A DNA stretch of 64,000 bases, taken from the NCBI GenBank assembly GCA_047495785.1, contig JBLDXI010000003.1, positions 682,001-746,000 on the forward strand, read 5' to 3'. Position 1 is the first letter of the stretch, and each line of letters opens with the position of its first letter. The position numbers and the translations under genes were made by a program. Positions 2,533 through 29,205 of the stretch are shown piece after piece. A model generated the notes under the pieces. That model was given only the letters and a program-made list of their open reading frames with translations, did no database searches and was not told the DNA's origin. Source of the stretch: Lepidodermella squamata. Lineage: Eukaryota; Animalia; Gastrotricha.

Positions 2533-5500
2533 CTAATCGGTCAACCGCTTCACCATACACTTTGCCAAGCTGCGGTGACCCATTTGCATGGCAACCTCGA
2601 TCGGAGTACAGCCCTTTTTGTTCTTCAGCTTCACCAAATCAGGTTGCCTCTCGAGCAGAAATTCAGCTACGTCTTCATCTCCATCATCGCGAGCTGTCAA
2701 ATGCAACAAGGTGTTCCCATCCTGGTCACATTGCGCCAAATCAACGCCATTGTCAACAAGCAGCTTGGCACATTTCGCACTTTTAATGCACAGAAAGAAT
2801 GGCTCGCAAACTTTCACATCGGCTTTGAACTCTTCTACGAGCAATTTAGCATAGTCATACAGATCGTGGGCACAGGCAAACATCAGAGGTGTATGTCCAG
2901 TGTCATCTTTTTCGTTGAGCAAATCGGGACATTTTGTAAGCACAAATTTAACCGCATCGACGCTCAACTTTTTATTCAATAGAGAGGTGAACAGAGATCG
3001 ACCGCTTTCTGGCACAATCCCGCGTAATTTAGCTCCTTTTTCGACCAAATACTCGGCGATCGCAATGAGGCCGAATTCCAGGGCGAGATAAACGGGTGAT
3101 TGATCGGCGAAATCAATATCGGAGCCGCATTCCTCAACAAGACATTTCACAACTTCTAGAGCCTTCCTATCAGCAATAGCGTAATTCAATGGAAAGCCAT
3201 GTTCAGACGGTTCAATCGAATCTGGTTGTAGTTTGGCGATGTGAGTGATAATTTCCACATTACCGCCCGCAATTGCGTCGAAAATCATGCGACGTTTATT
3301 AGGTTTTCCTGTTGAGACGCCAGCCTCAATAAGGTACTCAAAAACGTCCTTTTGACCAAAATGGCACGCGATAATGATAGCGGTTTCGCCCTGATTATTT
3401 TCGAATTCAAGACTCATTTTACGACTTTCGAGCAAGAATTTGACCAAATCGAGGTTACCACGCTCAACCACGTTGAGTAACAGATTGTTGCCCTTGTTAT
3501 CGATTTCACTTTCAAGATCAGCATCGCATTCATCGATGAAGAATTTCGCCATTTCAACACTGTCGGCGTGAAGAATGGCCGATTTTCCGTCGGGACATTT
3601 TCGATTCAACTTCGCCCCGTAGGTGTGGATCAAAAGTCGAGCCATCTCGACAGCTGAAGCAGATTTACATCCAGCAGCTTCCATCAGAAGGGTTCGGCGT
3701 TTTCTATCGCCGAGGTTTCTATGATTGGCGAGCATTAGCCGACAATCATCTTTTACATTTTTTCGACTAAACAAATTTGTCAGCGTTTCGAGGTCTCCAC
3801 TTTGAGCTGCATCATGGAGGAGCTTGAGATCACGTGCAATCTAAGAGTATAAACAACATAGTTATCAAATGCTATAAATACAAATTGACAAAAAAATTGA
3901 AATGGTGGCTGGTGGTTCGAAGGAATTTAGTTGGGAGGCACCTGGCAGCCAGTACCGGCGCAATCATGCTGCGTCTTCAAAAGGAAAACCCGGAATACCA
4001 AGTTCTGACCCTGTGCTATAAGATCGGAGTTCGTCTTTTGAAGACGATGTCTACGAAGGCGCAGCTCTTCGGCTGCTTGATATAAGAACCTCCATTCGGT
4101 TAATTAACCGTTTCCGTGAAATTTTCCCGGGCTATACTCGACGGCAATCAGCTCGAGACATTCCTGCTGCTCGTCCCCCGTCTGCTTGACTACACGACGC
4201 CAAAGAATTATTGGCGTAATATAAAAATCCTTCACTTCGAAGTTTCTACGCTTAACAATACATGCAAGCTCTCACGTCTTCATTTTAGCCCGTCGGTCTA
4301 CACTTTTCAAGATATCTGAAGATTAGTAATTGCCTTGCTGAAGTGATCAAATATAATAACCAAATGCGCCTATATCGTTATATTTTAAGCAGAAAAGATT
4401 GCAGACGTCGGCAAAACTGGTGTCGCCTTCAATTTCCCGAAAGGGACCAGTCAGTTTAGCTTGATTAAGCCCGGATTCTTAGCTATCACTGAGGGTTGAT
4501 TTACCCAAATTAATCCTGTATGCAGAATGATTGTATTATTGTTTCTATTACAGGGCAGATGAGTGACATCGCCAATAGCCTGGACAAATTTTGTGGAGCA
4601 AATGGGAAACTGCATGTCAAAAAAGGAGCAGGAGGAAGATTTAGCTACAGCCGTGAAAAATTTGACGACCCAGGATGGCGACCTGAGTCGGCAAATGCAA
4701 GGCGACGAACGCCCGCATCGACGTGACGAACGCCGCGACAAATGCCCGCCTTGACGCGCTTGGTAGCCGTCTCAATAATGTGGAGAATGCAATTGCATTA
4801 ATTACTGCTCCTCCCCAGGTATGGTCGCAATTTTTTGCATCTGCTCAATTCTTACACACACACACTCATAATTTCAGGTTTTTCCAAAAATAATTCAACT
4901 ACGACGTCGACGACATTATTAATAACTTCGTGTTTTACAGAGTAAGTTACAGAGTAAAATTACCGATGATTGTGTTTTTGTCCCCTCTTTAGCGGGACTC
5001 GCGAACCGAGTCCGGTTCAGACAACTTTCACTGTATACGCGTATATGCTACTGTATACCTTGTTCTCCGCCTTACAATTATGTACTAGACTTCGGCCTTG
5101 AGCAGCAAGTAGCCAATTACGAACGACCTGCACTCAGTTTTCCAAACGATTCCCCGTGCCGTAGTTCCGTTGTTGAGTCGGCCCAATCTAATCGTACGGA
5201 CAACTTTATTGTTGTCAACTCGTACTGAGTACTAAACTTAATTGCATTGCCTTGTTCTCGTTTCTTCTCTTTAAGCATTTTATTTGTTGAACCAAAAGGC
5301 CTAAGGATTATCCCAAGCAGCAAGCCATGAAGCAATGCTGAACAATTGGTAATTGATTGGCAATTGTCGTAGAAATTGGTAATCTATTATAAATTGGGGT
5401 ACTAATTAAGTGGCAATTAAGTAGCAATTTTTTAGCTGTAAAACAGGTAGTGATGCATCGGTCATTCCATGAGTTTTTGCGGCATTTTTCGAGGAAACCA

Positions 5501-7058
5501 AGCTGAGAATACTAATTCGCCCGCATCAGCCGCACAGAAACGTTATGCGCCGTGTCTGAAACCTAACACGAGTTCGGCGGCGATGTCAGTTGTGTCCCGG
5601 CCCCCTGCGTCAAGCCCGCCGTCGACTTCGAATTCAGATTTCACTTCCGATTCCGCTTCTACCTCAGCTTCGTCCACGCCTCGTCCTCGTTAGGTTGGAC
5701 TGGAATGATGCGAATATTATTTTCCCTCGGTTTGTGAGCATAAGCATGAATCAGCTATCTCAGTATAAAATCGCAAAAATAAGACTTATTAGCACCAGAG
5801 CCCGAATACATTTTTTTACTCGCCCGTGTTTCCCAGCTCGCCCGCGTAGAAGTTGTTTAGATAAAAAATCGTTTTCGGACCGCCCGCACAGCCCGGATTT
5901 TTTTTATTCACGTCGCCCGTAATGCCCGACCCGCCGCCCGGAAGAAAAAGCCAGGGAATAAAAAATGTACACGCGCCCGCATAGCCCAGATTTTTTTATT
6001 GCTCGCCCGTATTATCCGCCGGATCTCCCCGGGCGCAGTGGGGAATAACAAAAACACCCTTGATGATAGTTATCTGCTGAAATTCCGTACTTTAATCAAT
6101 ACTAGCGCCCGCATTTACAAGGCTTTACAAATGCTAGATAACATTTCTCATTAAATTGAAGAAACAAACCTTGAGATTCGTCAAATCAGCTGTTTCGATT
6201 TTTTCATTCGTCAGGGCGTCCATCTATTTTGAAATTAAGGGTAACAAATTCGTCCTAATAAATGTGCCAACCTTGTCATGAATAATCCCAGTCGCGTTCA
6301 GCATATCGCTAACTTCACGAGCGGAGCAATAGAGAGCAGATTTTTCCATAAGGTTATCGAGGTCACCTTCAAACCTGCCCATCTCAGCTCGTAATTCCTT
6401 GAGATTTTCTGTCTCGGCTTTCAGCTCACCCTCGATCTTTACAAGACGATCTTCGAGCTGGAATTAGCAATTAAGATTTCAAGTGACTTGAGCATATTTT
6501 TAGAGACTTACCCCACAAGCAATAAAGCTCAGTTCCAATTTCATCATTTTGAGATGCGGGACCAAGCACGCAGGACAGAAGACGACGTGGCAATGCGGGC
6601 ATCGTGTCGCCGCAGACGATGACACCAATACTGGGACATGTTGGCAGCCCTCGCCAACAAATTTGCTTCCAATTTCAGTTCGGCAACGTTTCGCCGGAAC
6701 AGGATCGATGTCTAGAGCTGCTATAACTTGTTGAACAGCGTAGTTCGACAGCTGACCTAGACTGTCTTTTTTGACGCTCGGTTGAGACTTGCGGCATTCC
6801 GGACATGCGAAATCGGCCGTAGAAGCTTCGCAGATCGACCTGACACATGCCTCGCAAAACGTATGGTTGCATAGGGGTAGAACTATCGGCTCACGGTAAA
6901 TATTAAGACAAATCGGGCACGTGAGAGCCTGGAAATCAATTATGAAAATCAATTTTTCAAACATGATTATAGCAACCCACCGAAACTATCTCGCCATCAA
7001 TTGTCACCTCGTGATGCGCTGGAACATGCTGAGACTTGTCGAGGTTTTTCTGCGCCAT
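2533..7058 (-). CDS. TRIM-like RING / B-box-like / coiled-coil / ankyrin-repeat protein, copy 1 (about 680 aa)
   Basis: Exons 7058-6981, 6928-6512, 6457-6272, 6223-6170, 3840-2533. All introns GT-AG and phase 0, frame open throughout. RING CPIC..CNHTFCEAC..CPEC; CQH..CPHC..CPAC..H; helical exon; many ankyrin repeats (GETAIIIAC, GHTPLMFAC, GNTLLHL). The last intron is 2.3 kb. Confidence 0.82.
5820..6040. repeat. CGCCCG-motif repeat cluster inside the TRIM-ANK1 intron (likely DNA-transposon subterminal repeats)
   Basis: Repeated CGCCCG units, and a duplicated block cgcccgca(c/t)agccc(g/a)gattttttt(t)att at about 5881 and 5974. Confidence 0.45.
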
Positions 7059-7549
7059 TTCGACTCAGTTTTACAATGGTCGTAAGAGCTGCCTAAAGAA
7101 ATAATTGTTACATATCATCAGTGTATATGAATCCTTCAATTCCCAAGCATGAGCGAAGATTTGAAAATAAGATTAAGTCTCCAAGAAGCCCCTTCATAGG
7201 AACTACCCGCCCCTTTTTTGTTTCATATTTGTTCAGCTTTTTAACGCCAGTAATTTGTTAGGACTGGCGACTAAATATATTTTTCAGCTCAATGATTTAA
7301 ACCCCGAGTTTTTCGTCTGCTTCTGGATCACTGTATCGGCAGTGTCGTTATCACTTTCCGGAGAACCGTGAGAATACCGAGCAATTCGTCTAGGTGATTG
7401 TTAAAAAACGATGCAGAAGAACTAATCAGAAGGTAGTTTGGTCTTTTGGTACGAACATTCTTAGGCTCCGTCATGGCAACTGATTTTAAAAAAGATCTTC
7501 ATCTTTTGCAACAGATTCAGTCGAATCTTCATTGATAGGCCTTCCCTGC

Positions 7550-8440
7550 TGGCAGCCGAGGTCACCCACGATGGCTCTTTCGGCAAACAAGATTGCTAAA
7601 AAAGCCGAATGGGTATTCATGGACCACCATCGCAATTCATGCAAATCTTCACGCTTCACGCAGAAACCGAGCCGGATCTGATCAAGCTAATCCTATAGGG
7701 GATGGCACTGGCCCAAAGAAAAGGTCAAATACTTGAAGTCTGGCAAGTTTGATGTCGAAAGCATTGCTGAGACATTTGGCATCGACTGGTGAGCTGCCAC
7801 GAAAGATCTCCGGCCCTGGAAAGATGGACAAGAACCTCATGCCTCACGCATAGACTCTACCCTTGAAAAATGATTGCCAAGCTCAATCGGTCCAGCTAAC
7901 GCATGTACCGGCTATCCTGTTGATTGAAATGGGCCTGTTCGCGACTACCGATTTCTCAGACGTATTCTCAATCAAACCAAGCAGGTCCGCCACGGAATCC
8001 AGGTCATGTCAAAATTCAAATTCAAATTTGATGACGCGAAACGCCGCATTAGACTTTGACGTACATTGGACATCGACATGGCGATCTTGACAGTGGCGTA
8101 CCTAGCAACGGCCACCAGAACTGTTTGAATGACTATCACTGATTACTTTCCGCCTATAATTTACGCCTAATCCTCCTATTAGTGCGTTGATTAAAACTTT
8201 AACTGTTAGCTCAATGAACTTCATAGTTCATGCATTGGTAAGAAGAACTTGTGGCACGTTCAGGTCGTCACCACCGCAATTCATGCAAATCTTAACGTGT
8301 CACGAAGAAACCGAGCGAGGTCTCATTCAGCCGCTGGTTTACGGTCTGCTCACTCGAAAAATCGGCGACTGTACGAATGGTTCTTCCGGGCTCCGATTGC
8401 AAACTCAAGAACTTTTGCCTTCAGCCACGCTGTACCTAAT
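7550..8440 (+). mobile_element. MULE (Mutator-like) transposase remnants
   Basis: Two related fragments: ..PPSQFMQIFTLHAETE (about 7620) and GTFRSSPPQFMQILTCHEETERGLIQPLVYGLLTRK (about 8250). Both match the MULE DGTF...FxQLxTIH...PxxYxLL pattern. Confidence 0.65.
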
Positions 8441-8702
8441 ATCTACGACGCGATGGGACGAGCGGTTTAAAGCTGTGAAACTGTGATTCGACCCTGTTTC
8501 CGTCTTTGATGCACCGGACGAACCAGCTTGAATTTCGCTAGAATCTTAAATAATTTCTAAATATAAACAAATATATAATGGTGTGAATTTTGACATTGAG
8601 TACATTCATTGAGTAAATAGGTATAATAATAAATATTGCCGGAATTTCTTCGATATGATAACAATGGAGTATATAATATAAATGTTTTCTTCCAGCCTGC
8701 CA

Positions 8703-11027
8703 TCATTCAGATTGACTGGCAAGAATCGCATTGAGTAAAGCTTTCGCGACTTCCTCCTTCTTCAGTTTGATAGCGAAATCCAACGGCGAAAAACCGGTAT
8801 TATTCCGAGCAGTAAGCAAAACCGGCGATTTTCGAGCAATAAATGTGATGAGTTCCACTGTTTCAGCAGCAGGAACGTCCGAACAAACAGACAAGTGTAG
8901 AACAGAACTGCCATTATTGTCCTTCGAGCACAGATCAGCGCCGTTCTCAACTAGGATCTCAGCACATTCTGCAGAATCAAAACACGACAGAATTGGCGAC
9001 CTGTGATGAACATCGGCCTTGAATTCTTCAATCAGGCACTTGACGAGATCAGGAAAGTCGCAGGCACACGCGTAATGGAGTGCAGTCTCGCCTTTTGAAG
9101 TTTTCTTACGCAACAAGTCAGGGCAGTGCTGCAAAATAAGGCGAACTGGTTCGATAGATCCAATCTCACAGCAAATCAACTGCAGCAGGTTGAGACTTTC
9201 CGAAGCATGCTTAAACTCAGCTTTCAAGTCAGCCCCCTTTTCAATCAAATACTTGGCCACTTCCATTGACTGTTGAAAACACGCTGCGGCAAGTGGAGTG
9301 TAGCCAGACCGATCCCGAGCTTCAATGTCAGCATGGCAATCTTCAACCAGAAATCGAATAACTTCCATAGCTTTCTCAACTCCAAGCTCGTCATCGGCGG
9401 ATGCAGAAATAGCACGAGTCAATGGAGTGGACTCGCGTTGGTCAGACGCGGCGGTATTCAACAGATCTGGGCACACTTCAAGGACGAACTTGATAACTTC
9501 CAGATTCCCTCCGCGAACAGCTTCCTTCAGCAGTGTATTTCCGTTACATCTCGCACTGAAATCTGCTCCTTTTCCGTGGAAATACCGCAAAATTTCGACA
9601 TGCCCATGCTTTGCAGCTTTGAAAACGCCGAAAACTACGCTTTCCTTTGGCGAGTCCACGGCGACATTCTTCTCTTCAACTATATATTTGATCAAGTCAA
9701 AGCATCCTCTTTTCGCAGCTTTCGTGACAATCGTATCGCCATAGTCATTTTTGCAGTTGAGCAGTTTAGGATCACATTCTTCTAGGAAGAACCTCGCCAT
9801 CTCAGGTGTTCTGACAAAGTGAATTGCTTGAGCACTCGACCGATATCGATTGGTAGCGTACAGATCAGCCTGGTTTTCTTTGATTAGAAAACGAGCGAAA
9901 TCAACCGCCTTGGGATCAAGACTAGCTGCCACTTGCATTAGCAAAGTTTTGCGCCATTTACTCGGCACATCGCGGTGGTTAGCCATGTAGATCTTAGCGC
10001 TTTTTGACAAGGATTTTCGGCCGAAAAGTTTGTACAATGCTTCGAAGTTGTCCTCTTCAGCGGCTTGGTGCATTTTCATCAAATCGTAGGGCAATTCACG
10101 ACTCAAATCCGCGATTCGCACAGTTTCATCGAAATTTCGATTTATATCAACCTATCAACAACTCGAACTTGCTGTTTCATAACATTCAAAAACACTCACC
10201 AAAAGGAAATGGCATTCCAAGGAAAATGTATAAATCTGCATCAACTTCGCCCCGCCGTGATACAACGAAGAAAAATCGAGTTGTGATATGTCAACCTTCC
10301 TTTCGTTCAATCTTTGCCGCATAATTGCAGCCCGAGTTTTAAGTTCTTTCAACCTCTCAACATTATTAGCCTTCAACGTCTCCAGCTTCAACTCAAACAT
10401 TTCATTCTGGTCACAGATCTAAGTTATAACTAAATGTGAAAGATTTTCTTTACGCTCGAAGATCGTTCTCACCCCACTTTCAATAATGTCAAGTTCCAGC
10501 AGAAGGATTTCACAGTGAGAGACCCAGCAAACAGAACAAAACCTTTGGCTGCAATGGTCGCAAAGCGTTGCGCTATTCGGTGCAGTGAAAAATGGAACAT
10601 GCAAGCAGTGTTCGCCCAGTTCTTTCTCGTGCCACAGATAAGTGAGATCATCCGGAGCTTGTTTAGCTACTTTGTACATCAAATTGAAGCGAGGATCGTC
10701 ACCATAAAGCGCACTAACGCAACGCTTGAGAGCGAAATTCGTCCGATATTTGTAATTTGGCGCGTCGACCTCGGGTTGAACCGACTCGCATAGAACGATG
10801 GGACACGTAAAGGGCTTTGAACGCTCTTTTCCCATGCATGATTTGCAAATTGTGTGGTTGCATCGGGGAAGAATAATGGGGTCCATGCTAGTTTTCTCAC
10901 AAACTTCGCAATGCAGGGCCTGAAATGACACGTTGAACAATTGGAATGGAAAAAAATCTGTCCCAATTACCCAAGTCAATTGGCCATCCAAATACAGCTT
11001 TTGCGCTACTGGAGGTAACGATTCCAT
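8703..11027 (-). CDS. TRIM-like RING / B-box-like / coiled-coil / ankyrin-repeat protein, copy 2 (about 723 aa)
   Basis: Exons 11027-10971, 10919-10473, 10418-10200, 10151-8703. Introns of 51, 54 and 48 nt, all GT-AG and phase 0. These join track ORFs 10419-11027, 10155-10400 and 8703-10121 into one frame. Confidence 0.88.
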
Positions 11028-12489: not shown

Positions 12490-12760
12490 TCACGGGATTA
12501 TGATTTTAGCGACCGACGCCAAGCTGCTTCGGCTGAGCAAATCCACACGCATTCATGTAGACGGAACCTTTGAGATAGTTCCCTTGTTTGATCAACTGCG
12601 GACAATTCACCATGAAGAGAAAGGTCTTGGTCAACCTGATGCCTTTGTTCTTTCAACTGACATGACTAGTGATATCTACGAACAAATTCTCGCAGTTGTT
12701 CTGGAGCACATCGAGCGCATTCAAAATCGACTTCGAGAGCCGTCTTTTTCACGTGCTTAG
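12490..12760 (+). mobile_element. MULE transposase fragment
   Basis: IHVDGTFEIVPLFDQLRTIH..PDAFVLS..IYEQIL carries the DGTF motif typical of MULE transposases. Confidence 0.75.
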
Positions 12761-13299
12761 AAAGCTGGTAACTTGAAAAGTCGATCTTCGACACTGCCGG
12801 GACCAGGGCAACACTGGTTTGTTTCCAGTAACGTCAGCAGCCGGGTCGAAGTCTATGAATCGCTTTTTGGGGCATTCTCAAAGCAGTCTCAAGATGCAAA
12901 ACGCCAGTTACACGACCGCTATGCCATTCACGTCGTTCACGAAAACACGAGTTGCGGTTCATGCCTTGTTCGCAACAGTCTAATTCCGACGATTGTGGCC
13001 TCTTCCCGGCATTAAAGAACGAGAACGGGTGAAACGTGGGCGGCACGCGGAAACAAGAAGTGTGCGCATTAATTATGCTAAATAAACGAATACCACAATT
13101 TTGAGATGAATTCGAAATAAATCTATGTTCTGATGTTTTCACTAACAGTAACAGAAGTACAGAGAGTCGCATTTTTATACTCTAACGCTTATTTAAGCTC
13201 GTTCGCGGTTGCTAATTCTGCAGTTTTAAATCACATGTACGAATAGCCAAAAACGCGTACATATTTATGTACGAATAGCGCCACTCTATTTTAACCAGA

Positions 13300-14557
13300 T
13301 TAATCAAATTAACATTCCATAAATCGATTCCAAACATTAACAAGTCCAAACATTTAGGCGATTATTACTAAAGAAGCCTATCTTGAGGCTGAGAAAAACT
13401 ATGCCAATTCGGTCAAGGCTTCCAGACTAGAGTTTGAGAAAAACTTGGCAGCTGAAAACAACCCGTCGATATTGTTCAAGTATATTAATTCTAGAATCAA
13501 GGCTCTCAATAATCGCCTACCGCTACTCGTTCACAATGGAGTTGACGTTACTGATGATTGATGATGCATCGAAAGCGGAAATATTTCGTGAGACTTTCGA
13601 AAAAAAATTTCGTACTCCTACTCATGCGTATACGAAGGATTATAAAATTGTAAACGACAGTCTTCAAAATATTGTTTTCAACGTCGATCTTGTTACTAGT
13701 CAATTGCGTTCGCTAAAAAACAGTTTCGGCTATGGCTTCGAGTTGCGCGTATCCCTTAACATTCATCTATATTGCTTCATTCTGTCTGAGTTCTGTTCCT
13801 TCCATTTGGAAGTGGTATTTTCTTCGACTAGGGCATCGTCGCTTTTCATACGATTCACTGTCGATTGTGTACGAGACCTAGGTGTTCAAGTGGATAGCGA
13901 GCTATCTTTCGAGACTCATTGTTGTTTACTAAAAAGGTGCAATAATTTGATTGGTTGTATTCTCAAATCTTTAAAAAGCAGGAATCTTCGTTTGAAAGCC
14001 TATAAAACCTATGTTTTACCACTACTCGACTATGCGTCCTCGGTTTATAATCCTTTCCATCTCGGGATTATTGATGATCTGGAGTCAATTCAGCGAAAAT
14101 TTTTAATGAAATTGTCGAATTACGAATCATCTGATTATAATTTTCTACTTAAAAAATTTGATTTGTTGTCTTTGGAACAGCGCCGATTCACTAAAGATAT
14201 TGTTTTCACTGACAAATTCTATCATAATCTTGTTGACGCTAAATTTTCAGATTTATTTACGCCTTCTAGCAACAAATATGCTCCTCTTCATCGCATTCGT
14301 CAATCTGAATGCCATTTGAACTGCAGAAAATATTCCCTTGACAGACGAATTGTTAATGTTTGGAATACTTTCAACATCGAAAATGTTCATTCTAGCCTAA
14401 ATTCATTTAAAAAATTTCTTATGAATATTGATATTGATAAACGTCTTTTGTCGTCAGTGAGGCGCCGTAATACGTGAAAAATTATCTTTCTTTTTCTGTT
14501 TTACTGTTTGCTACAATCGCAAGTGCGATAATTGCAAGTCAAATATAAATAAATAAA
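13300..14557 (+). mobile_element. CR1-clade LINE, internally deleted, with 3' end
   Basis: RT C-terminal motifs DLGVQVDSELSFETH, YKTYVLPLLDYASSVYNP, LESIQRKF and LLSLEQRR. An upstream piece reads NP..LFKYINSR..DDASKAEIF. Ends in a hairpin plus (AAAT)n tail. Confidence 0.8.
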
Positions 14558-14851: not shown

Positions 14852-17523
14852 TCAAGCTGTCAAGCTCGCTATTATCAGCAGTTTCTCCATTTGGAAATTA
14901 TTTCTCGCCCTTGCAACCTCAACAGGAGTAAGATTGTCATGATTCCTCACTTTCAGTAGGGCTGGTTGCTTATCGATCAAGTATTTAATGACTTGTTCAG
15001 TCTCCTCATAACCATAATTGCGTTCCGCAAATAAATGCAAGATGGTGTCACCATTGGCACTGCACTTCTCGAGATGCGCCCCGCTTTCAGCCAATAATTT
15101 TGCGCTTTCGAGATTACAGCTGAGAAGTGGCGAGTTGTGATTGACGTCAGCTTTGAAGTCTTCAATTAACATCTTGCACAGCTGATGTGAGTGAGCCGCT
15201 ACTCCAAGAGGAGTGATACCATCGTGTGAATCGTCTGCCTCCCTTTCCAATAAATCGGGCTGATGCTTCAAAACGAATCGAATCGCATCCGTGTCGAATT
15301 TAGTGTACGAGCATAGTTGATGCAATATTGTATAGCCACGATTGAGCCTTAACAAATCTGCCCCCTTTTCTATCAAGTATTCGGCAATTTCGAAGCAGCT
15401 TCTAAGCAGAGCGCATAGCGTCGGGCTACTTCTAAGGTCAGTGCCCTGATTGACATCAACGCCACAATCTTCAACGAGACACCTTACTACTGACAACGCT
15501 TCTTCTTCGTCATTAGAGTAATACTTTGTATCAATGGCGGACATCAAAGGCGTTAGGCCATATTCGAATACGACGTTAACCCACTGCGGTCGCAATGTAG
15601 CGAGGTAAGTGATGATATTCAAGTTACAGCCATTTACTGCCGCATCGAAGGTCAGCCCGTTCAACGCGTCGAGATTCGCCCCGTTCTCGATGAGGTAGTA
15701 GAATATCTCCAGGCAAGCCTTAACGGCTGCCAGCATCAAGGCAGTATGACCATTATCATTCGGAAAATTAACGTCAACGTGCCGCTCTTCGACCAAATGT
15801 TTCACAAGTTCAAGCTTTCTATCAACTACCATTATGCTTAAAAGATTCCAACCCTTTGGCCTGCCAGTTTCATACAAGAGCTTAGGATCGCATTCGTCGA
15901 GGAAAAAGTCCAGCATTTCAGCAGTTTCCGAGTAGTGAATAGCCATCACGTTGTTGTCATCTCTTCCGTAAATATCGGCACCCTGCTCTTTGACCAAAAA
16001 ACGGGCTAACTCTACCGCAGATTTCGATTTGTTTTGAGCTACTCCGGCCAACAAAAGATGGTGAGCGGTATATCGCGAGTCGGCATGGTTTGCTAGGAAA
16101 CGTCGGCAGGCTTTGGACAACGATTTTCTCTCAAATATCCGCTTCACTGTCTCGAGGTCATTGTCTAACGCAGCGTCGTGGAGAATCTTGAAATCGGAGG
16201 CAATCTAACACAAGATAATGTATTGACTTCAAGCATGTTTTAGTCGTTAATAAAATAATACCTTTGGAACCTTGGTTTTTATTTCTTTGATTCGAAGCTT
16301 GACCAAACTTGAAATCTTTAATTTGGCTCATACAACCATGTTTTGAAGTATTGGAATTTCGTTACCTTTGCATCAATCTCACAGGCAAGCCGCAGGACCT
16401 CGGCAAAATACTCAGCACAGCCATACAGCTCTGATTCTGCATTCATTTCGGCCAATTTCGCTTGGAAAGTTCTCATGTAAACAGGCAGATCTTTAGCAAT
16501 AGTCCTCAGCCCATTGCAGGTCTCCGAATCCGCATCGGCTTCTTCCAGGCGAGATTCCAGTGCTTCTGAAGCTTTCGAAAAACGATCTTCAAACTATAAA
16601 AACGATATACAGGGAAAGTTACTAAATCGCTCAACTACTAGGCTTGGTCCGAACAAATGAACCTCCAAAGTAATGTTTACGGTCTAATCTGAAAGCTATA
16701 AACAGGTGTCGAAACCGGTCAAATTTTTTGGGTCCGCAGTCCTGTTCAGACATGATAAATACATTTGCACAGGATTCGCAGAAAAATGCAAGCACCTGCG
16801 TAACAGGAGCCAACTCATGAAATTTTAGAATACTTATGCCAATTCCGGATCTAGCCATTTAATGCAATTATTCATATGGAATATTATAAATTTCACTCTC
16901 GAAAATAACACAACTTTGTAAAATCCTTAAAGTTACTTTGGCCTGGCGTGGTGAATTTAGAAAGTCAATTTATATATATATAGATAAACTAACCCCGCTT
17001 GCAATACAGTTTACCTCCAGCTTGAGCATCACGAGATGGGCAACTAGACAGGGTGGGCAGAACCTGTTCTCACAATGGGTACAAAAAGTTGCCGAAGAGG
17101 GGCTGACCATAGATGGGATATGAAGGCACATCTCGCCGATCACATTTCTAACTGATTGGCATTTCAGTCTATTCACCAATTGATTCGAGCGTTCGTCGCC
17201 TTCGCATACAATAGCGTCAAGAGTTCGCTGCATTACAAAATTCGTCATCGAATTTACTGTATCTTTCGTTACAGAAGGCTGCGGTTCACGGCATTCTGGG
17301 CATGAAAACCTTTCACTGGATTTGCATATTCGAACGACGCATTCTTTACAATAGGTATGCCTACATTCTGGAAGAATAACTGGCTTTCGAAAGATGCTCA
17401 GGCAAACCGAACAAGTTAACGCCTGTGTATAATAGAGACAATTAACGATACCAGAGCAAATTTTCCAACGTATACGGATATTATTTCGCCGTCAAATGTC
17501 AGCATCTTACTGCCGGCCATCAT
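14852..17523 (-). CDS. TRIM-like RING / B-box-like / coiled-coil / ankyrin-repeat protein, copy 3 (about 703 aa)
   Basis: Exons 17523-17476, 17422-16994, 16593-16366, 16315-16262, 16204-14852, all phase 0. The 54-nt exon 4 has the same length as in copy 1, although its acceptor is a weaker AAG. RING CSVC..CRHTYCKEC..CPEC. Confidence 0.82.
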
Positions 17524-18227: not shown

Positions 18228-19553
18228 TCAATTACTATCGCCGAAATATGGCAAAGATATGTACGACTCGATTCCGCATCTATTGACACCCTTTCGAATC
18301 TTGCCGTAGCCGTTGTAGCCCCACGTCTTGCCCCATGAGTTGCGGATGATCCAGTAATCCTCATTTGTCGTCGGGTCCGTACCATAGCCAACCAACGTGA
18401 CTGCGTGATTGATTTTTGTTGAGCAATCCCTATCGTCCCAAACACCTTCCTTGTAGGCTTCAAACTTATCGGAACCTGCGTCCATACCGACATCAACTGG
18501 TCCGTATTGCAGCGCATTTACCATTCGCTCAGCCATGGAGCTTTGGGGAACCAGGATGATATTATTGAGCGTTTCCGCGCCTTTAATCCAGTAAAATCCG
18601 GTGATGTTGATGGCGACGGCCTTAGTGCTATCCAATTGACACCCGTTGGTGTCTGACATTGTGTAAGCGTAGTCCTCAGCCTTCGCAAACACCTTGTTTC
18701 TGCGATAGTAGGTAGCGCCGTTCAAAAAGGTCCCACCGTTGCAACCGTTGTTGTTGCCAACTCCTTTGGAGCAGTCGACAAGTTGCTGCTCGGACATCGA
18801 AATAGGCGCAGCCTTGTTCTTGATTGCTAGCCTTGACTCGACAACGGCAGTCGTTGCGAAGGAGTAGCAGGATCCACATTTCCTTTGATTCTTAATCGGT
18901 GTCAGGTAGCCTTTGCTACGCCAGTCGAGAACCGTACCGGGCATGACGACTGCATCTTCTTCGGATACTGTTTGGGAAGGCACATTGTTGTAATTCGTGT
19001 CCACTGCGGCATAGGAGTTGAGAGGCCGACTTGTTACGGCTTCTCGAATAACATCTCTCCCCTTCTTGCCCGATGGAACCGGCAAGCAAGTTCGAGCACC
19101 AATTTGATCGTCGTGCTGAAGCTCAATAAAGCAGACTTCGCAGCTATCACTACTTGAACATGTTGTTGACATACGGAAGTTGACACCCCGCTTGCGACGG
19201 CGTTGACTTCCTTCGGTTTCAATCTCCACAGGATCTTCATCCGGCAATGCGCCACGCAAGTTCTTCTTCTTCCATTCTGAGGATTTCGAACTGTATTCGT
19301 TGAGACCATACTTGACATCAGGGTCATCGGTGTTGTTAGCATTCCATTTGTCAATGTCTTCGAGCTCCTCGAGCAGTTCTTCCTCTTCCTCGTCATCAGC
19401 CGCTTCGTCGTCGAAGTTTTTATTGTACTGTTTCTTGAAATCAACCCAGCGATGATCATCTGGAGTGCCAGGCTGCTTGAGGCCACGCCCGCTGGCAGCT
19501 ACGACCACTAGCAGGCATGATAATGCGATGATAGCCAACAAGTAATTCCTCAT
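18228..19553 (-). CDS. Papain-family (C1A) cathepsin L-like cysteine protease, secreted, intronless, copy 1
   Basis: Signal peptide, I29-like prodomain, mature DWRSKG start, QRKCGSCYSF (catalytic Cys), NHAV (His), RNSWG (Asn). Confidence 0.95.
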   Translation of the reverse strand: MRNYLLAIIALSCLLVVVAASGRGLKQPGTPDDHRWVDFKKQYNKNFDDEAADDEEEEELLEELEDIDKWNANNTDDPDVKYGLNEYSSKSSEWKKKNLRGALPDEDPVEIETEGSQRRRKRGVNFRMSTTCSSSDSCEVCFIELQHDDQIGARTCLPVPSGKKGRDVIREAVTSRPLNSYAAVDTNYNNVPSQTVSEEDAVVMPGTVLDWRSKGYLTPIKNQRKCGSCYSFATTAVVESRLAIKNKAAPISMSEQQLVDCSKGVGNNNGCNGGTFLNGATYYRRNKVFAKAEDYAYTMSDTNGCQLDSTKAVAINITGFYWIKGAETLNNIILVPQSSMAERMVNALQYGPVDVGMDAGSDKFEAYKEGVWDDRDCSTKINHAVTLVGYGTDPTTNEDYWIIRNSWGKTWGYNGYGKIRKGVNRCGIESYISLPYFGDSN

Positions 19554-21091: not shown

Positions 21092-22101
21092 ATGGGGAAC
21101 GCCAATTGCAAAGCCTTCCTTTTTGATAGTCTACTACCTGTAGCTTATCCTACTTATGAGGAGCTTCAACTGACGATAGCGTTGGATAAATTCGATGAGA
21201 CTAGGCTCAATTTACTCTTGAATGTACTCAAAGAGCTCAACAAAGAGCTCGACGAATTGTATGACGGATATTTCAATTTGCACCACGAACTATTTCGACC
21301 TCTACGAGACATAATGATTACCTGTCAAAGTTTTCTTTCTTACCTTGTTCGACTGAGCAGTGAAGCCTTCTCTATTGAGAAAGAACAAAGGTTTGGTCCT
21401 GAAAGTCATGAAATACCCGCGATATAAAGATTCAATTTATAACCAGGATTGAAATTATTCAGCGGTGTTTGGAGTGCCAAGTTCACCTTGCCGGACTGTT
21501 AGGACTGGTCGAGTTCAAAATGCGCAACACTTGCGAAGAAATGGTAGATTTCCTCGCCAAGGTCAAAGCAGTTTTTTCAGCCTACTATAAATTCATATAT
21601 CCCGTCGAAACATACGGACGAATCGATCTTGTCGGGCTGAAATGCGCCTTGTTAGCCGAAAGAGGTCATTCAACCCAGTCGTCTGATAATGACTGCCTCC
21701 TGATCGAACAATCCTTTCAGCTGTCTGCTTGTTCTACTATAGCTCTGCGAAGTTTGCAGAGAACAGCATCAGTTTCTGTTGAGGAAATAGACTTGAAGCC
21801 TCGGAATTTTGTTCGAGAAAATCGAGTTAACATTGGAAGTAATTGGTCTCGTCTGCCACTGTTGCCGGTAACATCTAGCAAGCCTAAGATTTCGAATTAC
21901 GCAGACTCTCTGATGAGGTATCGAAAACGGGACTCTTCGAGTAACGAATACAACAAGCTGCCTTTACTATTTGAAAGCCGCAAGATACCCCAGTTAAGCC
22001 TGCCGAAAATGCGAGTTCGAATCGATGATCCTCAACTTCTTGGAACTTCGCGGCGGCAGCTGAATCAATACGCAAAAAACTGGACTTCGTGGGACGAATA
22101 G
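21092..22101 (+). CDS. Uncharacterised helical protein (about 317 aa) with possible N-myristoylation
   Basis: Exons 21092-21390 and 21447-22101 joined by a 56-nt GT-AG phase-2 intron that fuses two track ORFs in frame. Starts MGNANCK. Confidence 0.6.
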
Positions 22102-22701
22102 TTCTTTAAACTTCATTTACTCAGTAATTGGTTTCCATCAATATTACTCGCGTCTAGAACGCCATTCAATTCTCTTGTGTTAAATTAGAAATGGGGAAAA
22201 TCTCGAGAAACAAATAAAAACTCTTAATGGCGTCAGTTGTAACCGTTGAGTACGTTTTTTGCCTCAGCTTGAAGCATTATGTGTAGGTACCTAGTGCTTA
22301 TTCTCTGCGTATTATAGCAAAGAACTAAACAGCATGCACGATTCAGGCTGAGCAGTATTACCTCGACTACAACGAAATGTCAACATTTCCAAGTTGAATT
22401 CTAATTTTACTCATGAACATTTCTTCTTTATTTCTCCTCTCAGCAGCCCAGATAAATTATATGACATAATAGGATACTGATGAAACCAACCCTGGACCAT
22501 AGGCACGCTAGATAATTTTGATTGTGCCACAGATAAACCACAACATACATGCAGTGGTATAATCCGAATGAGAATTAGTAGAGCGAACTCAAAGGTCAAG
22601 CTAGTGCGGATTTTGAGTAGCCAAGATATCCCAACGTCTGAAATTGAGAATATCTCTATCTTGTGTGTATTTATTATTAAAAATCTCATCCGTGTAGAAA
22701 C

Positions 22702-22951
22702 ATGTTTATCGAGATCATCGCTGGTATCGTTTGCATTTTTGCGGTTCAATTTTAGCATTTTACTGCTATCAGCAGTTCATCTACTATCGAGATTACGTGT
22801 TGCTTACCTGGGGAAGGCTTTTCAGGACATACTCCTGAGCACTGGCTACAGAAATCTCCCGGCATACGCTGACGTGATAACAAGACATTTGGATCGCAAA
22901 AAGTCGAGCGCGCAAAATGGCAAATTCTACGGCTATTACATGGGATCAACA
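22702..22951 (+). pseudogene. Truncated, frameshifted duplicate of the 5' end of the adjacent cytochrome P450
   Basis: Begins ATGTTTATCGAGAT like 23134 and shares GGCAAATTCTACGGCTATTACATGGGATCAAC with 23341-23372. Indels break the frame. Confidence 0.85.
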
Positions 22952-23133
22952 CAGGCCTCGATTCGGGGTTATAAACTGCAGTCAGTAATCCTTTTTTGAA
23001 AGCCCCATGCATTGCATAAATGAAGGTCTGATTCGGTGAATAGGCCAATAAACAAATAACTATTTAAAAAAAATGTGCCATTCCCTTTCAACGCGAAGAT
23101 CTTAAATACAGCTTTCTATTCAGTGTAGAAGAA

Positions 23134-24758
23134 ATGTTTATCGAGATTATTGCTAGTGTCGTCAGCATTTTTGGCGGCTCAATTTTCGCATTTTACTGCT
23201 ATCGAAAATTCATCTGCTTTCGAACTTTCAAACGCGAGGGCTTACCTGGTCCAACCCCGCACTGGCTACTCGGAAATTTACCGGCATTTGCCGATGTGAA
23301 AACAAGACATTTGGTACACAACAAATGGAGCAAACAGTACGGCAAATTCTACGGCTATTACATGGGATCAACGCCATGTTTCGCCGTCAGCGATCCAAGA
23401 CTAGCAGAAATTGCGCTCGTCAAGTTGTTTAGTGAGCTACCGTCCAGAAATCCGCCGCCAACTGTCGATCCAGATTCAGATAAAGAACCGTTGTCTATTG
23501 CAAACGCTAGAGGCCCCCGCTGGAAACGACTGCGAGTGATTTGCAGTGCAATATTTTCGTCAGGCAAAATGCGAGCTATGCCATCTTTGATGATGAAGCC
23601 TCAGATAGAATTCCTTAAATTGCTAGCAGAAAAAGCTGCTAAAACCGAGGCATTCGACATTTATCCATCATACAAACTATTGACACTGGATATGATCGCC
23701 GAAACGACTCTGGGTCTTGAACTTAACTCAATCGCGACCAGTGGCAAGCAGGAGAACGTAGTGTTAAACATTTTAAACGACATTTTCAATAGCATGGCCT
23801 CACGATCGTTGTTGTTTCAAATCGGAATAGTATTTCCTGAGCTCAAAACAATAATCGGACCACTGGAACGCATGAGAAGCAAGTTCTTCCAGTCTGGAAT
23901 GTCCTATCACAGTAAGAAATTGGAAAATCTCATGGAACAAGTTATTATTGAGCGGAGAAATAGTGGAAAAACTGATAAGATGGACTTTCTGCAATTAATG
24001 CTTCAACTTGAGGAATCGGTCGCAGATCCGGCTGAATTGGACGGACATAAGGGGTTAACTGTTCAAGAAATTACCGGGCAAGCCAACACCTTCTTAGGAG
24101 CTGGATACGAGGTTAGTCCTAATGGTCTTGAAAGTTCTTGTATTAATGCGAACAACTATTGATATTGCAGAGCTCAAGCACTACACTGGCCTTCGTAACC
24201 CATTTCCTAGCGAATGATTCTAGAGTCCAAGACAAGCTGATCGAAGAGATTGATTACTATTTTTCAGATCCGGATAAAGTACCAGATTACGAAAACGTTG
24301 CTCCACTGAAATACTTGGATGCAGTGATAAATGAGACGCTGCGCATTATTCCGGTAGGCCATGCTACGAATCGAGTCGCCGTGAAGAACACCGAGATTGA
24401 AGGAGTGCGGATAAGCAAAGGCGATGTAATTATGATTGACATCTGGACTATCCACCGCGACGAAGAGCAATGGGGCCCTGTTGATGTCGAGAAATTTTAC
24501 CCCGAGCGATTTCTCGAAGATTACCCTACTACAGCTAACCGGCATCCGGGCGCTTTGCTAACATTCAGTAACGGGCCAAGGATGTGCATAGGAAAGCGAT
24601 TTGCCATGCTGGAAATCAAGATGACTTTCATCAATATTCTTCGGAAATATCGAATAGTGAAAACGAAGGAGACAGGCGATGAACCCAATATTATTGCGAC
24701 TCTGTTGGTAAAGCCAGCAAATGGAGTCTATATAAAGCTCGAAAAACGAAAAATATGA
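23134..24758 (+). CDS. Cytochrome P450, clan 3 (CYP3A/CYP13-like), about 521 aa
   Basis: Exons 23134-24111 and 24171-24758. N-terminal anchor plus PGP, WKRLR, I-helix AGYE|SSST, ETLR, PERF, and heme motif FSNGPRMCIG. Confidence 0.93.
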
Positions 24759-24951
24759 AATTTCTATCAAGGAAAACTGGTAATGTAATATCCTGGAAGT
24801 TTTTTGAAACCTTACGGGCATTTATCAAACATAAATAGCTTTTTTTGATACGCATGAGGAATGAGGACTATGAATTGTTGAAAACAATGTCAAAACTGAT
24901 TACTCACTAAACTATTATTTACTGTGCGGTCCAGCAAACTAACCCCTGTCT

Positions 24952-26650
24952 TTAAGATAAAATAAAAATACACGCTTTTATTTGACAAACCTGAAGAGGG
25001 CGAAATGCCTGATTGAGCTTTCTCAAATATTCGATCTAAATTGAGAACATTAATGAGTGCGTATTGAGAAGTCGCGAAAAATGGTTATTCTAACCTCTCC
25101 ATTGATATGGCGAGCCAATTCTGTCAAAACTTTGGTGTAGTCGTTAGCACAGTCGTTAGCACAGCAAACAAGTTCAGAAGATTCCATCAACTTGGCTAGT
25201 TTGTTGTTGAAGCGCTCAAACTTCCGCGGCAACTTCAGTGCGGTTTTACGAAGTCGAGCCACTTCCTCCTCGGTAAAATCGACACCGTTCTCCTCGAGTC
25301 GCCAATCGAGTTTACCCAACGCATTAGCAAGACGGCTGTCAAACTGCAAGATGAAAGAAAGGGTATGGTTAGGCATGTTATGAAATGATAAATCGTCAAC
25401 GAAAATGATCGAAAGTAAAAACAAATACTTAATACGATGAAGACAGGGTTCTTAGGGGAAAGTGATCACATCATCCCAGCTGACGTTCTCATCGGAAGGC
25501 CAGCTAGCAAAGTTCACCTTAACATTCAGGCTAACTTTTTAGTAATCATCACCATCAGCATCACTTTGGGATGGCGAAGGTTTCTACATCAACGAAATTT
25601 CGCAGAATCTACTTTACTCAATGATAATGACCCTCATCTGTCAGAATTTCTATTTTCAGTCAGAATTCGAGGCTTTTGCTGAATTATCGGGGATGTTCAA
25701 AAACCTTTCATGATTTATTCACCAAACAATTGGCGGCGACGAATTCTGGAACCTCAAGTCCACTGCAATTCTTTGTTCAATTCTTCATAATTCTTCGTAA
25801 AAGGAATTGGTCAAGAAAAAATCGAAGAAAGTCTTCTCAGAAAATGTTGTTACGTTTGAAAATTAGTGTTTTAATATCTGCATTAATTTTAATAGACCTA
25901 CCACGATCGGCACTAGAACGCTGCGTATTGGCATGGTGGTTCGCCAACTTCAGGCACGTGCATAAATCTCAAAAACTTTTTAGGGTTTTTAGGTTTTAGC
26001 TGTTAGATTAGTCACTTCAAGGTGAAACAAGAATTTATCGCAATTCAAAAGCCCAGATACTGACCTCGATGGACATCACGCTTATTTCGGCTTCCAAAAT
26101 TGAAAGATGCACAGCATGGCATGGTGCGCAGAACCGCTGGTCACAATGCGAGCATAGCGTAGCTGAAGCTGCAGAAACAAAACAAGGCACATGCTGACAT
26201 CGCCAATCCGGGTTGTTGCCAGAGGTATCGCATTTCAACCGTTTCTCGCCAATTTCATAATTTACAGCTTCCCCCTTGCGATCAACGACGACTAAGGTAT
26301 CAATACAACGCTTCATCGCAAAATTAGTCTTATTGCGCGGGTTGCTAAGAGTCTCGTCAGGCTGAATTCGGCGACAATCCGGGTAAGTAAAGACGTCATT
26401 CCCAGCACCCATATCTGATTGAATACCCTTTTTACAAAAGGTGTGATAACAGGATGGCAGAATGGCTGGATCGTCGAGAATTCGCGAACACCTTGCACAG
26501 TGAAGAGACTACTAAAACACGCAATTAATAATAATAATAAATAATAAATGCGCAAAATAATACCGATATGAGCTCGCCCTCAATGATCAGGGGTTGACTC
26601 GAAATGACCACATCGGCGCCGTGTTTCCGCTCACAGGTCGAAGAGGTCAT
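24952..26650 (-). pseudogene. TRIM-ANK family copy 4: degenerate RING, B-box-like and coiled coil, no adjacent ankyrin exon (pseudogene or truncated/decoy form)
   Basis: Exons 26650-26564, 26508-26065, 25343-25095, 25035-24991 are in frame. RING ligands lost (CKKG, YPDC). Donor CAG|GTTTGT at 24990 has no following ANK exon, and read-through stops at 24952. Confidence 0.72.
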
Positions 26651-26843
26651 TAAAACCGAACCCTAATGTAAACGAATGCTTAACTGTACTATATTTAAAA
26701 TCTATCAATTAGAAATAATTCCAGAATCTGAAATCATTCATTAAATAGAAATAGACCTAATGAAACAAGGAACCAAAATTGTTTTTCAAGAAAGATATTT
26801 GATGATTTTTGTAATTAGCCCAAAATTGGCTGAGATAGAAAAT

Positions 26844-29205
26844 TCATGAAGAAACCAGCTTCGCAGCAAAAAGTTTCGCGAGACCAAATTGATTATTTTC
26901 AATTGCTAATTCAACGGGTGACAAGCCATTTTTGTCTTTCATTTTGAGCAGCCTAGGTTCTCGTTCGATAAACCAATTCACGGTTGTCGCCAAAATCTCG
27001 TCCATGTCCCATTTATCCATAATAATAAAATGCAGCACGTTGTAGCCACACACTTCATCGCAATCAGTCAGTTTTGCGCCATTTCTCAGCAGAATTTCTG
27101 CAGATTCAATGCAATTTCGGCAGTCGAGAATCGGGGAAAGGTGGTTCAGGTCGGCCTTAAACTCCTCCACAAGAATCCTAAGTAATAGCAGCTGCTCGTG
27201 GATACACGCGAATTGAAGCGGTGTTTTGACGTCATCTTTAGCTTCCCTTTCCAACAATTCAGGACATTTTTTCAATAGAAACCGAACAGCATCAGCATTC
27301 TTATCAAAACAAATTTTGTGTAGCAGAGTTATCTGAGATTCTTCATAGGTTTGTAGCAGATTAGCGCCTTTTTTTATCAGGTATTTAGCTATTTTTATTT
27401 GGTTGGAACGCAACGCAACACTGAGCGCATCGGAATCGCCAGCCATTGCATTAACATCTGCACCGCATTCTTCGACAAGGCAACGGACAATGTGTAAACG
27501 AGATTCCTGGCTGAGTTCGGAATCGCATTTCTCAGGCGAATCGACGGCTAGAATCAGTGGAGTGAATTTTTCACCCTCTGGGACTGTGTTAACGAGCTGG
27601 GGATTCAGTTTTCCGATACGAGCGATTAAAGCCGTATTGCCACTACATATTGCTGCGCAAAAAATAGAACCTTTGCATTCGTTGAGATCCGCCCCGGCTT
27701 CGTAAAGACACTCGAACACATCCAAGTGACCAGCGCGAACTGCGTGGTAAAGAGGCGTATGCCCATCACCGGCCATGAATGCAATGTTCGTTTTCCGCTC
27801 TTCGACTAAATATTTGATCACGTCTAAATTACCCTGTTTGACTTGGGTCACGAGTATACTTCGGTCAATGGACTCGATGTCCTCAAAGTTCATTCGACAT
27901 TCATCGAAGAAAAATTTCATCATTTCAAGTGTTCCGGCGTAATGAATCGCGAGTAATCCATGATCATCTGCGCTGTAAATATTCGCGCCTTGCTCATTCA
28001 CCAGGTATCGGGCCACTTCAACGGCATCAGGGGATTCACTCAAGGCAACACTCATCAGCAAAGTTTTATGCGTTTCGTCACGCGAACTGACGTAATTCGC
28101 CAGGTGACGGCGCATTCCTTTGGTTAGCGAATCTCTTTCAAATATCCGCTTCACCTTTCCCAACTTGCCTGTGATCGCAGCTTTGTTTAGGGCTAAGACA
28201 TCTTTGCAAAACTTCGGCCTTCCCAACTCATCAGCAGTGATAGATTCGGCAGATGGAAGTTTATGCTCCTTCAAACTTTCAATCTAAAATTGCAATAGGA
28301 AAATTCAAAGTAAATGCTGAAATTCAACATTCAACTAGCAATACCAAGCCATCTATAAAGTGAGCAAGGTCGAGAACATCCAAGTAATCGCGCAAGCAGC
28401 TAAATAATTCGATGGATTGTATCAGCTCGGAGTACTTCTCTTTAAAAGTTTCAAGCCTACGCGGTAGCTTTTTCGCCATTTTTCGAAGTTGGGCTATTTC
28501 ATGTTCGCTAAGGTCGATAGATTTGTCTGCGAACCGCTGGTCGAGTTGAGCTGAAGCCTTGGCCAGGCGTGAGTCAAACTACGTTAAACAAATTGTGATT
28601 TGCGTGCTTTCATAAAGCGAAGAAAAAGTGACATTACCCCACTAGCAATAATGCCGATTTCAATTTTCAAAACGGAGAGATGCACCGCTAAACAGGGTGG
28701 GCAAAAACGATGATCGCAGTGTGAACATAACGTAGCCGAGGATGCTGAGACCAAAACAGGCACGTGCTGACATTGATGACCCAAATTGTTTCTTACGGGC
28801 ATGCATTTTAAAGGTTTATCGTCGCCTTCATCTTCGTTATCGACGGCAATTAGCGAGTCGACTGTGCGTTTTAGGGCGAAATTCGTCATTTCGCTGAGGC
28901 TTTCCGAAGTCAGGGCGGGTTGGAGTTCGCGACACTCAGGACAGGTAATCGCGTCCTTCCTAGCATTCATAACAAGTTGAATGCAACTTTTGCAGAATGA
29001 GTGATTGCATGTGGGTAAAATGATAGGGTCAACGTAGATCCGCAGGCATATCGAGCAATGAAGAGACTGGGGGAGAAAAATAATTTTTTTAACCTGACGA
29101 TTTGATGCTCTTGTTTACCGAAATCAGCTCACCATCCACGGCCATTGATTGGCTCGAGAGTACCACATCAGGGCCATTTTTTCGAGTCCGGAAATTATTG
29201 GACAT
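26844..29205 (-). CDS. TRIM-like RING / B-box-like / coiled-coil / ankyrin-repeat protein, copy 5 (about 729 aa)
   Basis: Exons 29205-29119, 29066-28638, 28578-28345, 28283-26844. Introns of 52, 59 and 61 nt, GT-AG, phase 0. RING CSIC..CNHSFCKSC..CPEC. Confidence 0.88.

Follow-up and report, generated by a model that had tools for sequence, protein, structure and literature searches.

Within a 64-kb stretch of the Lepidodermella squamata genome (hereafter the window), open reading frames with a RING domain repeatedly lie just upstream of open reading frames with ankyrin repeats on the minus strand. This raises the questions of whether each pair forms one gene or two neighbours and, if one, from where such a protein descends. 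We consider that loci A, C, D and E are probably single spliced genes for TRIM-like RING E3 ligases, in which a Thin-derived N-terminus is joined to ankyrins and which have been multiplied in tandem.

The window carries four intact minus-strand genes (A, C, D, E) and one truncated copy (B); no additional family copies were found in the 64 kb. Gene A (729 aa) starts with a short exon (29205–29119) which includes the start codon and ends with a conserved x-D-G-E-L/I-I/V-S motif. Exon 2 (29066–28638) encodes the C3HC4 RING, a post-RING helix, a linker, a zinc finger of Thin/NHL-1 type and the start of a long helix. It is followed by a helical, coiled-coil-like region (exon 3, 28578–28345) and by a linker and 13 ankyrin-type repeats (exon 4, 28283–26844). 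The other intact genes have RING and zinc finger in exons 1–2 (C, 17523–17476 and 17422–16994; D, 11027–10971 and 10919–10473; E, 7058–6981 and 6928–6512), then a helical region, which with its linker occupies two exons in C (16593–16366 and 16315–16262) and E (6457–6272 and 6223–6170, where it is short) and is divergent and confined to exon 3 in D (10418–10200). C and E share an extra 18-codon exon between the coiled-coil and ankyrin exons. The ankyrin exons lie at 16204–14852 (C, 703 aa in total), 10151–8703 (D, 723 aa) and 3840–2533 (E, 680 aa). Gene B (26650–24952; exons 26650–26564, 26508–26065, 25343–25095 and 25035–24952; 287 aa) has no ankyrin exon.

An exon-by-exon check found all 17 introns across A–E to lie in phase 0 with GT..AG ends, and internal stops are absent from every exon. 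These features uphold the sequence-only reading, in which a RING and an ankyrin reading frame were joined into one spliced gene of 680–729 aa at four loci; the proposed junctions (10200/10151, 28345/28283, 16262/16204 and 6170/3840) are all exact, and the order RING, B-box-like finger, helical region, ankyrins recurs in A, C, D and E. At A, C and D the junction introns are phase 0, of 48–61 nt, and include no polyadenylation hexamer. The last intron of E (6169–3841; GT..AG; 2329 nt) contains AATAAA/ATTAAA and is the least secure junction. Its ankyrin-exon acceptor falls at the same codon as that of gene C, and neither family fragments nor clear terminal repeats were found within it.

C3HC4-type RING models from Pfam score above cut-off in A, C and E (gene A exon 2: zf-C3HC4, E 1.4e-10) and below it in D and B. 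The predicted structure of gene A exon 2 (pLDDT 87) matches the RINGs of TRIM25, TRIM69, TRIM21 and TRIM2 with Z 9.5–11.3 (TRIM25, 11.3), and the best PDB sequence match of the RING query is TRIM2; judged from this model the RING is of TRIM type. All eight zinc ligands are present in A, C, D and E. The CxIC/CxVC and CPxCR motif predicted to face the E2 is intact in A, C and E, while the E2-facing residues of D are atypical (CPIVLCE). Gene B lacks two ligands (C28>G, C42>Y) and is predicted to be RING-dead.

Of the B-box-like element previously proposed, the finger is present and the canonical eight-ligand B-box is not: we find seven canonical ligands with B-box1-like spacing, the last His of PML B-box1, the best PDB match (E 0.06), being missing. 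Pfam zf-B_box gave no match in the window genes (best, ANCHR-like_BBOX, E about 0.05), and the finger model (pLDDT 83) returned mixed zinc-finger folds (AN1, Z 4.6; plant B-box COL2, Z 3.5; PML B1, E 3.7). Its C, H, C, C, C and H are nevertheless invariant in 33 sequences, among them mite Thin and the NHL-1 proteins of nematodes and Daphnia, and a family profile retrieves Thin/NHL-1 proteins sharing the CxHC-x4-C-x2-C-x3-H finger. On these alignments, what was called a "B-box" is the Thin/Abba/NHL-1 finger with its seven ligands and not a canonical B-box.

Helix is predicted from the finger through the exon end in the model of gene A exon 2. Heptad-like periodicity was detected in the helical region of A (p about 0.05), B (p 0.006) and C (p 0.008) and is not significant in D and E. 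This region is ~100–125 aa long in the window compared to ~170–190 aa in the relatives described below, with which it shares weak profile similarity (E 0.004); its profile similarity to that of Thin is not significant.

All four long exons match Pfam Ank models (Ank_2, E 1e-34 to 1e-44). The arm comprises 13 ankyrin units with a three-repeat periodicity (lag-3 score 30 vs 20–23 for lags other than 3 and 6), and these C-terminal exons encode ankyrin arrays where Thin/NHL-1 has an NHL beta-propeller. Identity between paralogues is only 32–42% in the ankyrin exon and, at predicted binding-face positions, 12% compared to 47% on the exposed convex face (p 2e-8); such a variable binding face is consistent with varied targets. 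The window arms rank 1, 5, 7 and 12 of 140 and have the same repeat-class order, which points to, but does not prove, that the arm arose once for the two species. A word-indexed search with the ankyrin exon of A returned nothing but generic ankyrin proteins, and no RING was present in any of them. We rejected a toxin reading because the PDB latrotoxin matches are generic ankyrin stretches and a toxin domain is absent.

Run X1, in which the P450 intron is spliced out and cover is little or none upstream of A and over most of the B intron, is probably RNA. Its contigs extend over gene A's exons for the RING, the helical region and the ankyrins. The sole spliced junction (...LAREIDGK|IEYLRKL) crosses the intron homologous to 28345/28283 and maps to 25037/25151 in gene B; it comes from a paralogue, whose downstream exon was not seen. 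No single read or contig reaches from RING to ankyrins in a transcript of a window gene, and none is a direct junction read for gene A. Of the junction reads proposed earlier as a check, the one recovered thus shows a paralogue spliced after its coiled-coil exon. Joints between opposite strands, 28284/28444 among them, resemble library artefacts and were left out of the evidence.

Metagenome contigs that stem from two or more other animals (source records ERZ23486764, ERZ27332993 and SRR23086389) carry the same RING/zinc-finger exon, and the intron falls at the same codon as in the window genes, exactly 14 codons past the last finger His, in 22 of 23 matches, from partly overlapping contigs. 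In one relative species, helical region and ankyrins form a single uninterrupted exon in tandem arrays; the exon that follows is, for most copies in the arrays, a single ORF of 420–490 aa encoding both, so that the fusion exists there without an intron. In sample L018 the same finger, with its intron, is combined with NHL-type propellers; in sample L001 the finger lacks that intron and a Neuralized ORF lies downstream. The family had been regarded as lineage-specific. The five window copies do form one clade (98/94), in agreement with a tandem, species-specific expansion, but the architecture itself extends to these other animals.

A profile of the helix-plus-ankyrin ORF recovered metagenome family members and generic ankyrins only. 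None of the best 150 matches to the RING/finger profile has ankyrins in the same ORF, since gene calling on genomic DNA breaks the gene at the intron. Another RING/finger profile search was insensitive (3 matches), a JGI metagenome scan gave two unrelated RING genes, and the ESM Atlas gave no cluster combining RING and ankyrin.

Since the tree includes no outgroup TRIMs and its deep support is weak, the evidence for descent from Thin is the common finger together with the relatives that carry NHL. Like the window genes, Thin/Abba (Drosophila CG15105) and nematode NHL-1, of TRIM-NHL class VII, have an N-terminal C3HC4 RING and a finger (C-x1/2-[HC]...C-x-H-C-x4-C-x2-C-x3-H) which runs straight into the coiled-coil helix and is likewise missed by Pfam as a B-box. 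They differ in carrying a long low-complexity spacer and an NHL propeller where the window genes have 13 ankyrin repeats, in their longer helical region and in their first ligand pair (C-x2-C rather than C-x-H), and, unlike the window genes, they do not form multi-copy tandem arrays. Canonical TRIM/RBCC proteins (TRIM2/3, TRIM21, TRIM25) share the RING followed by a dimer helix (Z 9.5–11.3) and the order RING, zinc finger, helical region, variable C-terminal module; the window genes, in contrast, have a lone finger with B-box1-like spacing and no eight-ligand B-box, whereas a lone B-box is reported always to be of type 2 (PMC2533329). Fish finTRIM arrays resemble the family in their birth-and-death tandem expansion.

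BARD1, Mind bomb, KEG and XBAT also combine RING and ankyrins. These ligases and XB3 are, like the window proteins, single chains whose ankyrin array is the likely binding module, but they are not known to have a B-box-like finger plus coiled coil between RING and ankyrins; moreover the RING of XB3 and Mind bomb is C-terminal, and BARD1 has few ankyrins together with BRCT domains. The XB3 family has been described as RING and ankyrin ligases (PMC3596331). The view that ankyrins stand outside the standard TRIM classes is borne out by three TRIM surveys, in which they do not figure among the C-terminal modules (PMC2533329, PMC3503706, PMC3137616; 0 mentions), and no RBCC-ankyrin match was found among the database proteins searched. 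The ankyrins most likely replaced NHL and not, as had been supposed, SPRY, because the N-terminus belongs with Thin/Abba/NHL-1 and the group-2 TRIMs, which bear SPRY, are reported not to occur in invertebrates (PMC2533329).

The N-terminal module, made up of the RING, the dimer helix behind it, the seven-ligand finger and the long helix, would thus descend from a Thin/Abba/NHL-1-type TRIM-NHL gene. In an ancestor of the group to which this animal belongs, this module would have been joined to an ankyrin array in place of the NHL propeller, with tandem multiplication occurring independently in different species. By analogy with TRIM biology, the helical region would dimerise the protein and the concave face of the ankyrin arm would bind a target; clustering would bring RINGs together, activating E2~ubiquitin and leading to target ubiquitination. 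Different paralogues may read different targets. Dimerisation, ligase activity and substrate binding are predicted properties of the window proteins.

What such ligases might recognise allows two readings, to each of which we give somewhat less than even chances. They may be intracellular immune receptors, sensor ligases comparable to TRIM5/TRIM21 whose ankyrins recognise proteins of pathogens or transposons and change under an arms race. Separate expansion of tandem arrays in two species, the divergence of the paralogues with a hypervariable concave face, and the broken copy B, as in birth-and-death families, favour this. However, a close paralogue shows 7 nonsynonymous vs 7 synonymous changes among the differences listed, and between-sample variation in the relative (10 nonsynonymous vs 16 synonymous codons) is mostly synonymous and consistent with purifying selection; neither comparison reveals a nonsynonymous excess. 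A variable concave face is also usual for any ankyrin family, and Thin/NHL-1 relatives work in muscle and protein turnover (PMC10453674). The genes could instead be housekeeping or developmental ligases diversified in substrate (protein quality control, muscle or cuticle turnover), extending the function of Thin, with local duplication setting their copy number. This accords with descent from Thin/Abba, a sarcomere-maintenance ligase (PMC10453674), with the purifying-selection signal and with the neighbouring cathepsins, whose tandem expansion indicates that duplication is common in the window; but the very low binding-face identity and repeated independent expansions exceed housekeeping needs.

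A bacterial endosymbiont or virus is an improbable source of the ankyrin arm, fused by horizontal transfer to a host TRIM N-terminus. Although the ankyrin exon is intronless and its best database matches are mostly metagenomic and bacterial ankyrin proteins, these are generic and mostly 21–31% identical, and long intronless exons are frequent in the window (cathepsins, P450); no donor was found, since the viral scan was empty and the prokaryote-genome matches were generic. That the RING/helix and ankyrin reading frames are separate neighbours joined by a gene-modelling artefact is very improbable: copy B without ankyrins, the 2.3-kb intron with hexamers required in E and the missing direct junction read for A would fit, but the relative's single helix-ankyrin exon, the short hexamer-free introns of A, C and D and the spliced paralogue junction speak against it.

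For the single-gene reading, ankyrin becomes a C-terminal module new to the TRIM classifications checked, and an N-terminus of the Thin/NHL-1 branch appears to have been reused with NHL, ankyrin and probably Neuralized ends in one animal group, independent tandem expansions accompanying this reuse. The proteins would amount to natural fusions, within one chain, of a RING ligase and a large repeat-protein binder, and it becomes testable whether a diversified invertebrate TRIM receptor system evolved without SPRY. More speculatively, and in our judgement doubtful, they would constitute an undescribed TRIM class, RBCC-ANK, derived from Thin/NHL-1 in a probably gastrotrich ancestor and forming a germ-line-encoded "DARPin-ligase" repertoire which ubiquitinates pathogen or selfish-element proteins; if true, tens of paralogues differing in their ankyrin binding faces would be intracellular receptors, and the repertoire would have arisen convergently with the PRY-SPRY TRIM arrays of vertebrates. 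As to its surroundings, the truncated gene B adjoins the 3′ end of a P450 gene.

Exon-by-exon checking of the five minus-strand family genes in the window, which lies in a small-intron genome (GC about 43%) and also holds P450, Nipped-B and cathepsin genes, shows A (729 aa), C (703), D (723) and E (680) to be intact. Gene B, which ends at 287 codons with no ankyrins, is missing two RING ligands and probably represents a copy in decay. Each of the 17 introns is bounded by GT..AG and in phase 0; the length is 48–61 nt in 14 of them. The intron before the RING and that lying 14 codons past the last zinc-finger His occupy identical positions in all five genes. The four junctions between coiled-coil and ankyrin exons proposed in the sequence-only reading (10200/10151, 28345/28283, 16262/16204 and 6170/3840) proved exact. 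Immediately before the RING, exon 1 of each gene ends (at 29119, 26564, 17476, 10971 and 6981 on the minus strand for A to E) with a conserved x-D-G-E/Q-L/I-I/V/T-S/W motif. No clear element was found in the 2.3-kb intron of gene E (3841–6169), which has short GC-rich direct repeats at 5811–6018 and patchy low-complexity stretches.

Are the RING and ankyrin ORFs parts of one gene? Run X1, a probable RNA run, behaves as RNA, since its contigs lack the P450 intron (24109/24169), and none lies upstream of A or over most of the long B intron. In gene A, the RING, helical and ankyrin exons are all covered. The suggested check for junction reads gave a mixed outcome: none of the contigs listed joins the exons across A's own last intron, but in a contig from a close paralogue the helical exon is fused without an intron to the next, reading ELVCCANDYIKVFELAREIDGK and then IEYLRKL; the intron removed corresponds by homology to A's 28345/28283. 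Comparative evidence for a single RING-ankyrin gene is stronger than these contigs. A profile built from the five window RING/finger exons matched single-exon fragments from other animals. Metagenome contigs L003–L007 (ENA assemblies ERZ27332993, ERZ27333047, ERZ23486764 and ERZ23486787; GC 36–37%) carry tandem arrays in which RING/finger ORFs alternate with ankyrin ORFs; L002 comes from a separate sample, SRR23086389. As in the window, a GT lies exactly 42 nt past the last His in 22 of 23 zinc-finger matches, from partly overlapping contigs. In most array copies a 49–72-nt intron is followed by a single ORF of 420–490 aa in which helical region and ankyrins lie together, so that their fusion there is independent of any splice model. 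The proposal of one spliced gene is thus upheld by the paralogue junction and these ORFs. For 23900–29800, X1 and a second run covering this DNA both include further copies about 88–90% identical to A's ankyrin exon and to the P450, and X1 additionally such copies of B's exons, so that closer paralogues or a duplicated segment lie elsewhere in the genome.

The RING and the helix following it gave a high-confidence model, whose best matches in a fold search are the RINGs of TRIM25, TRIM69, TRIM21 and TRIM2 (Z 9.5–11.3). The E2-facing CxIC/CxVC and CPxCR are kept in A, C and E; gene D is atypical. The second finger (C-x-H-x12-C-x-H-C-x4-C-x2-C-x3-H, with a helix directly after) had been called B-box-like. 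A zinc finger does lie between RING and helix, but a Pfam scan did not match it as a B-box, and it has no counterpart of the eighth ligand in PML B-box1, which is its top PDB match but not a significant one. Its confident model best matches mixed zinc fingers (AN1, Z 4.6; plant B-box COL2, Z 3.5; PML B1, E 3.7). The same finger, with an invariant CxHC, occurs in proteins named Thin (mite) and NHL-1 (nematode, Daphnia, wasp), whose C-termini are instead NHL repeats. These proteins likewise fall outside the canonical B-box definition, and the window proteins are therefore filed as TRIM-like, probably working like a TRIM.

That ankyrins replace SPRY, as first suggested, is made unlikely by this common finger, by NHL-ended relatives on metagenome contig L018 and by the reported absence of SPRY-type group-2 TRIMs from invertebrates (PMC2533329). 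We infer from sequence comparison that the ankyrin arm took the place of NHL. The tandem genes of L018 (7549–17006) combine the same RING and seven-ligand finger with divergent NHL-like propeller ends, with the intron at the same place in two of three. In the metagenome animal they make up a sister expansion. On L001 (4464–6499) the N-terminal module is contained in a single 460-aa ORF, after which comes a Neuralized (NHR) ORF; this possible RING-finger-CC-NHR gene has the same finger without the intron at that place. L008 (3764–9786) and L009 carry a RING-finger-CC-ankyrin gene whose helical region is of full length, directly downstream of a TRIM-NHL gene which we take to be Brat-like; the ankyrin-type gene may be a conserved founder copy.

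The window arm comprises 13 units: between an N-cap and a C-cap lie two repeats and then a three-repeat unit present three times (lag-3 similarity 30 vs 20–23 at lags apart from 3 and 6). Metagenome array members have about seven units in the same class order and, scored against the relatives' profile, window arms rank 1, 5, 7 and 12 of 140 ankyrin proteins, which suggests, without proving, a single origin. Database, viral and prokaryote-genome searches found no bacterial or viral donor. Ankyrin-exon paralogues are 32–42% identical. Positions equivalent to the randomised face of designed ankyrins, taken as the binding face, show 12% identity; for the exposed convex face the figure is 47% (p 2e-8). 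This would fit a different target for each paralogue; such variability is usual among ankyrin families, is due in part to loops and is no evidence of positive selection. Listed differences are seven nonsynonymous and seven synonymous for a close paralogue, and 10 nonsynonymous and 16 synonymous codons between samples of the array species.

Heptad-like periodicity is confined to A, B and C, and the helical region is about 60 residues shorter than that of relatives, whose profile it resembles weakly; similarity to Thin's is not significant. All five window copies group in a single clade (98/94) separate from the metagenome arrays, in a tree with weak deep branches and outgroup TRIMs left out; the expansions are hence independent. 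In TRIM ligases the coiled-coil dimerises, the C-terminal arm recognises the substrate and paired RINGs activate E2~ubiquitin, with TRIM32/Thin as precedent (PMC10453674). By analogy, the helical region would dimerise the protein, the ankyrin arm would bind substrate and RING dimers would activate E2~ubiquitin. The family is quite likely one of substrate-diversified RING ligases; if so, an immune receptor role is, on present evidence, about as probable as a housekeeping one. The claim that ankyrin lies outside the standard TRIM classes agrees with three surveys that nowhere mention it (PMC3503706, PMC2533329, PMC3137616). Literature searches of open-licence papers found no RBCC-ankyrin family, and sequence and profile database searches, with blind spots from length limits and word seeds, no full-length RING-ankyrin relative.

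Of the retroelement-like fragments at 13434–14477, 44791–46308 and 61433–61993, the second has a Pfam-confirmed RVT_1 domain (45529–46308); the other two, lacking an informative Pfam match, look LINE/Penelope-like by eye. Between cathepsin and P450, adjacent plus-strand ORFs of 111 and 210 aa (21092–22101), with no Pfam match, probably make up a single spliced orphan gene. The papain family is represented by five cathepsin L-like genes without introns (18228–19553, 30145–31461, 32535–33851, 37059–38384 and 39553–40869), in which a basic RRxKR-type site and a Cys-rich insert that varies separate the prodomain from the catalytic domain.
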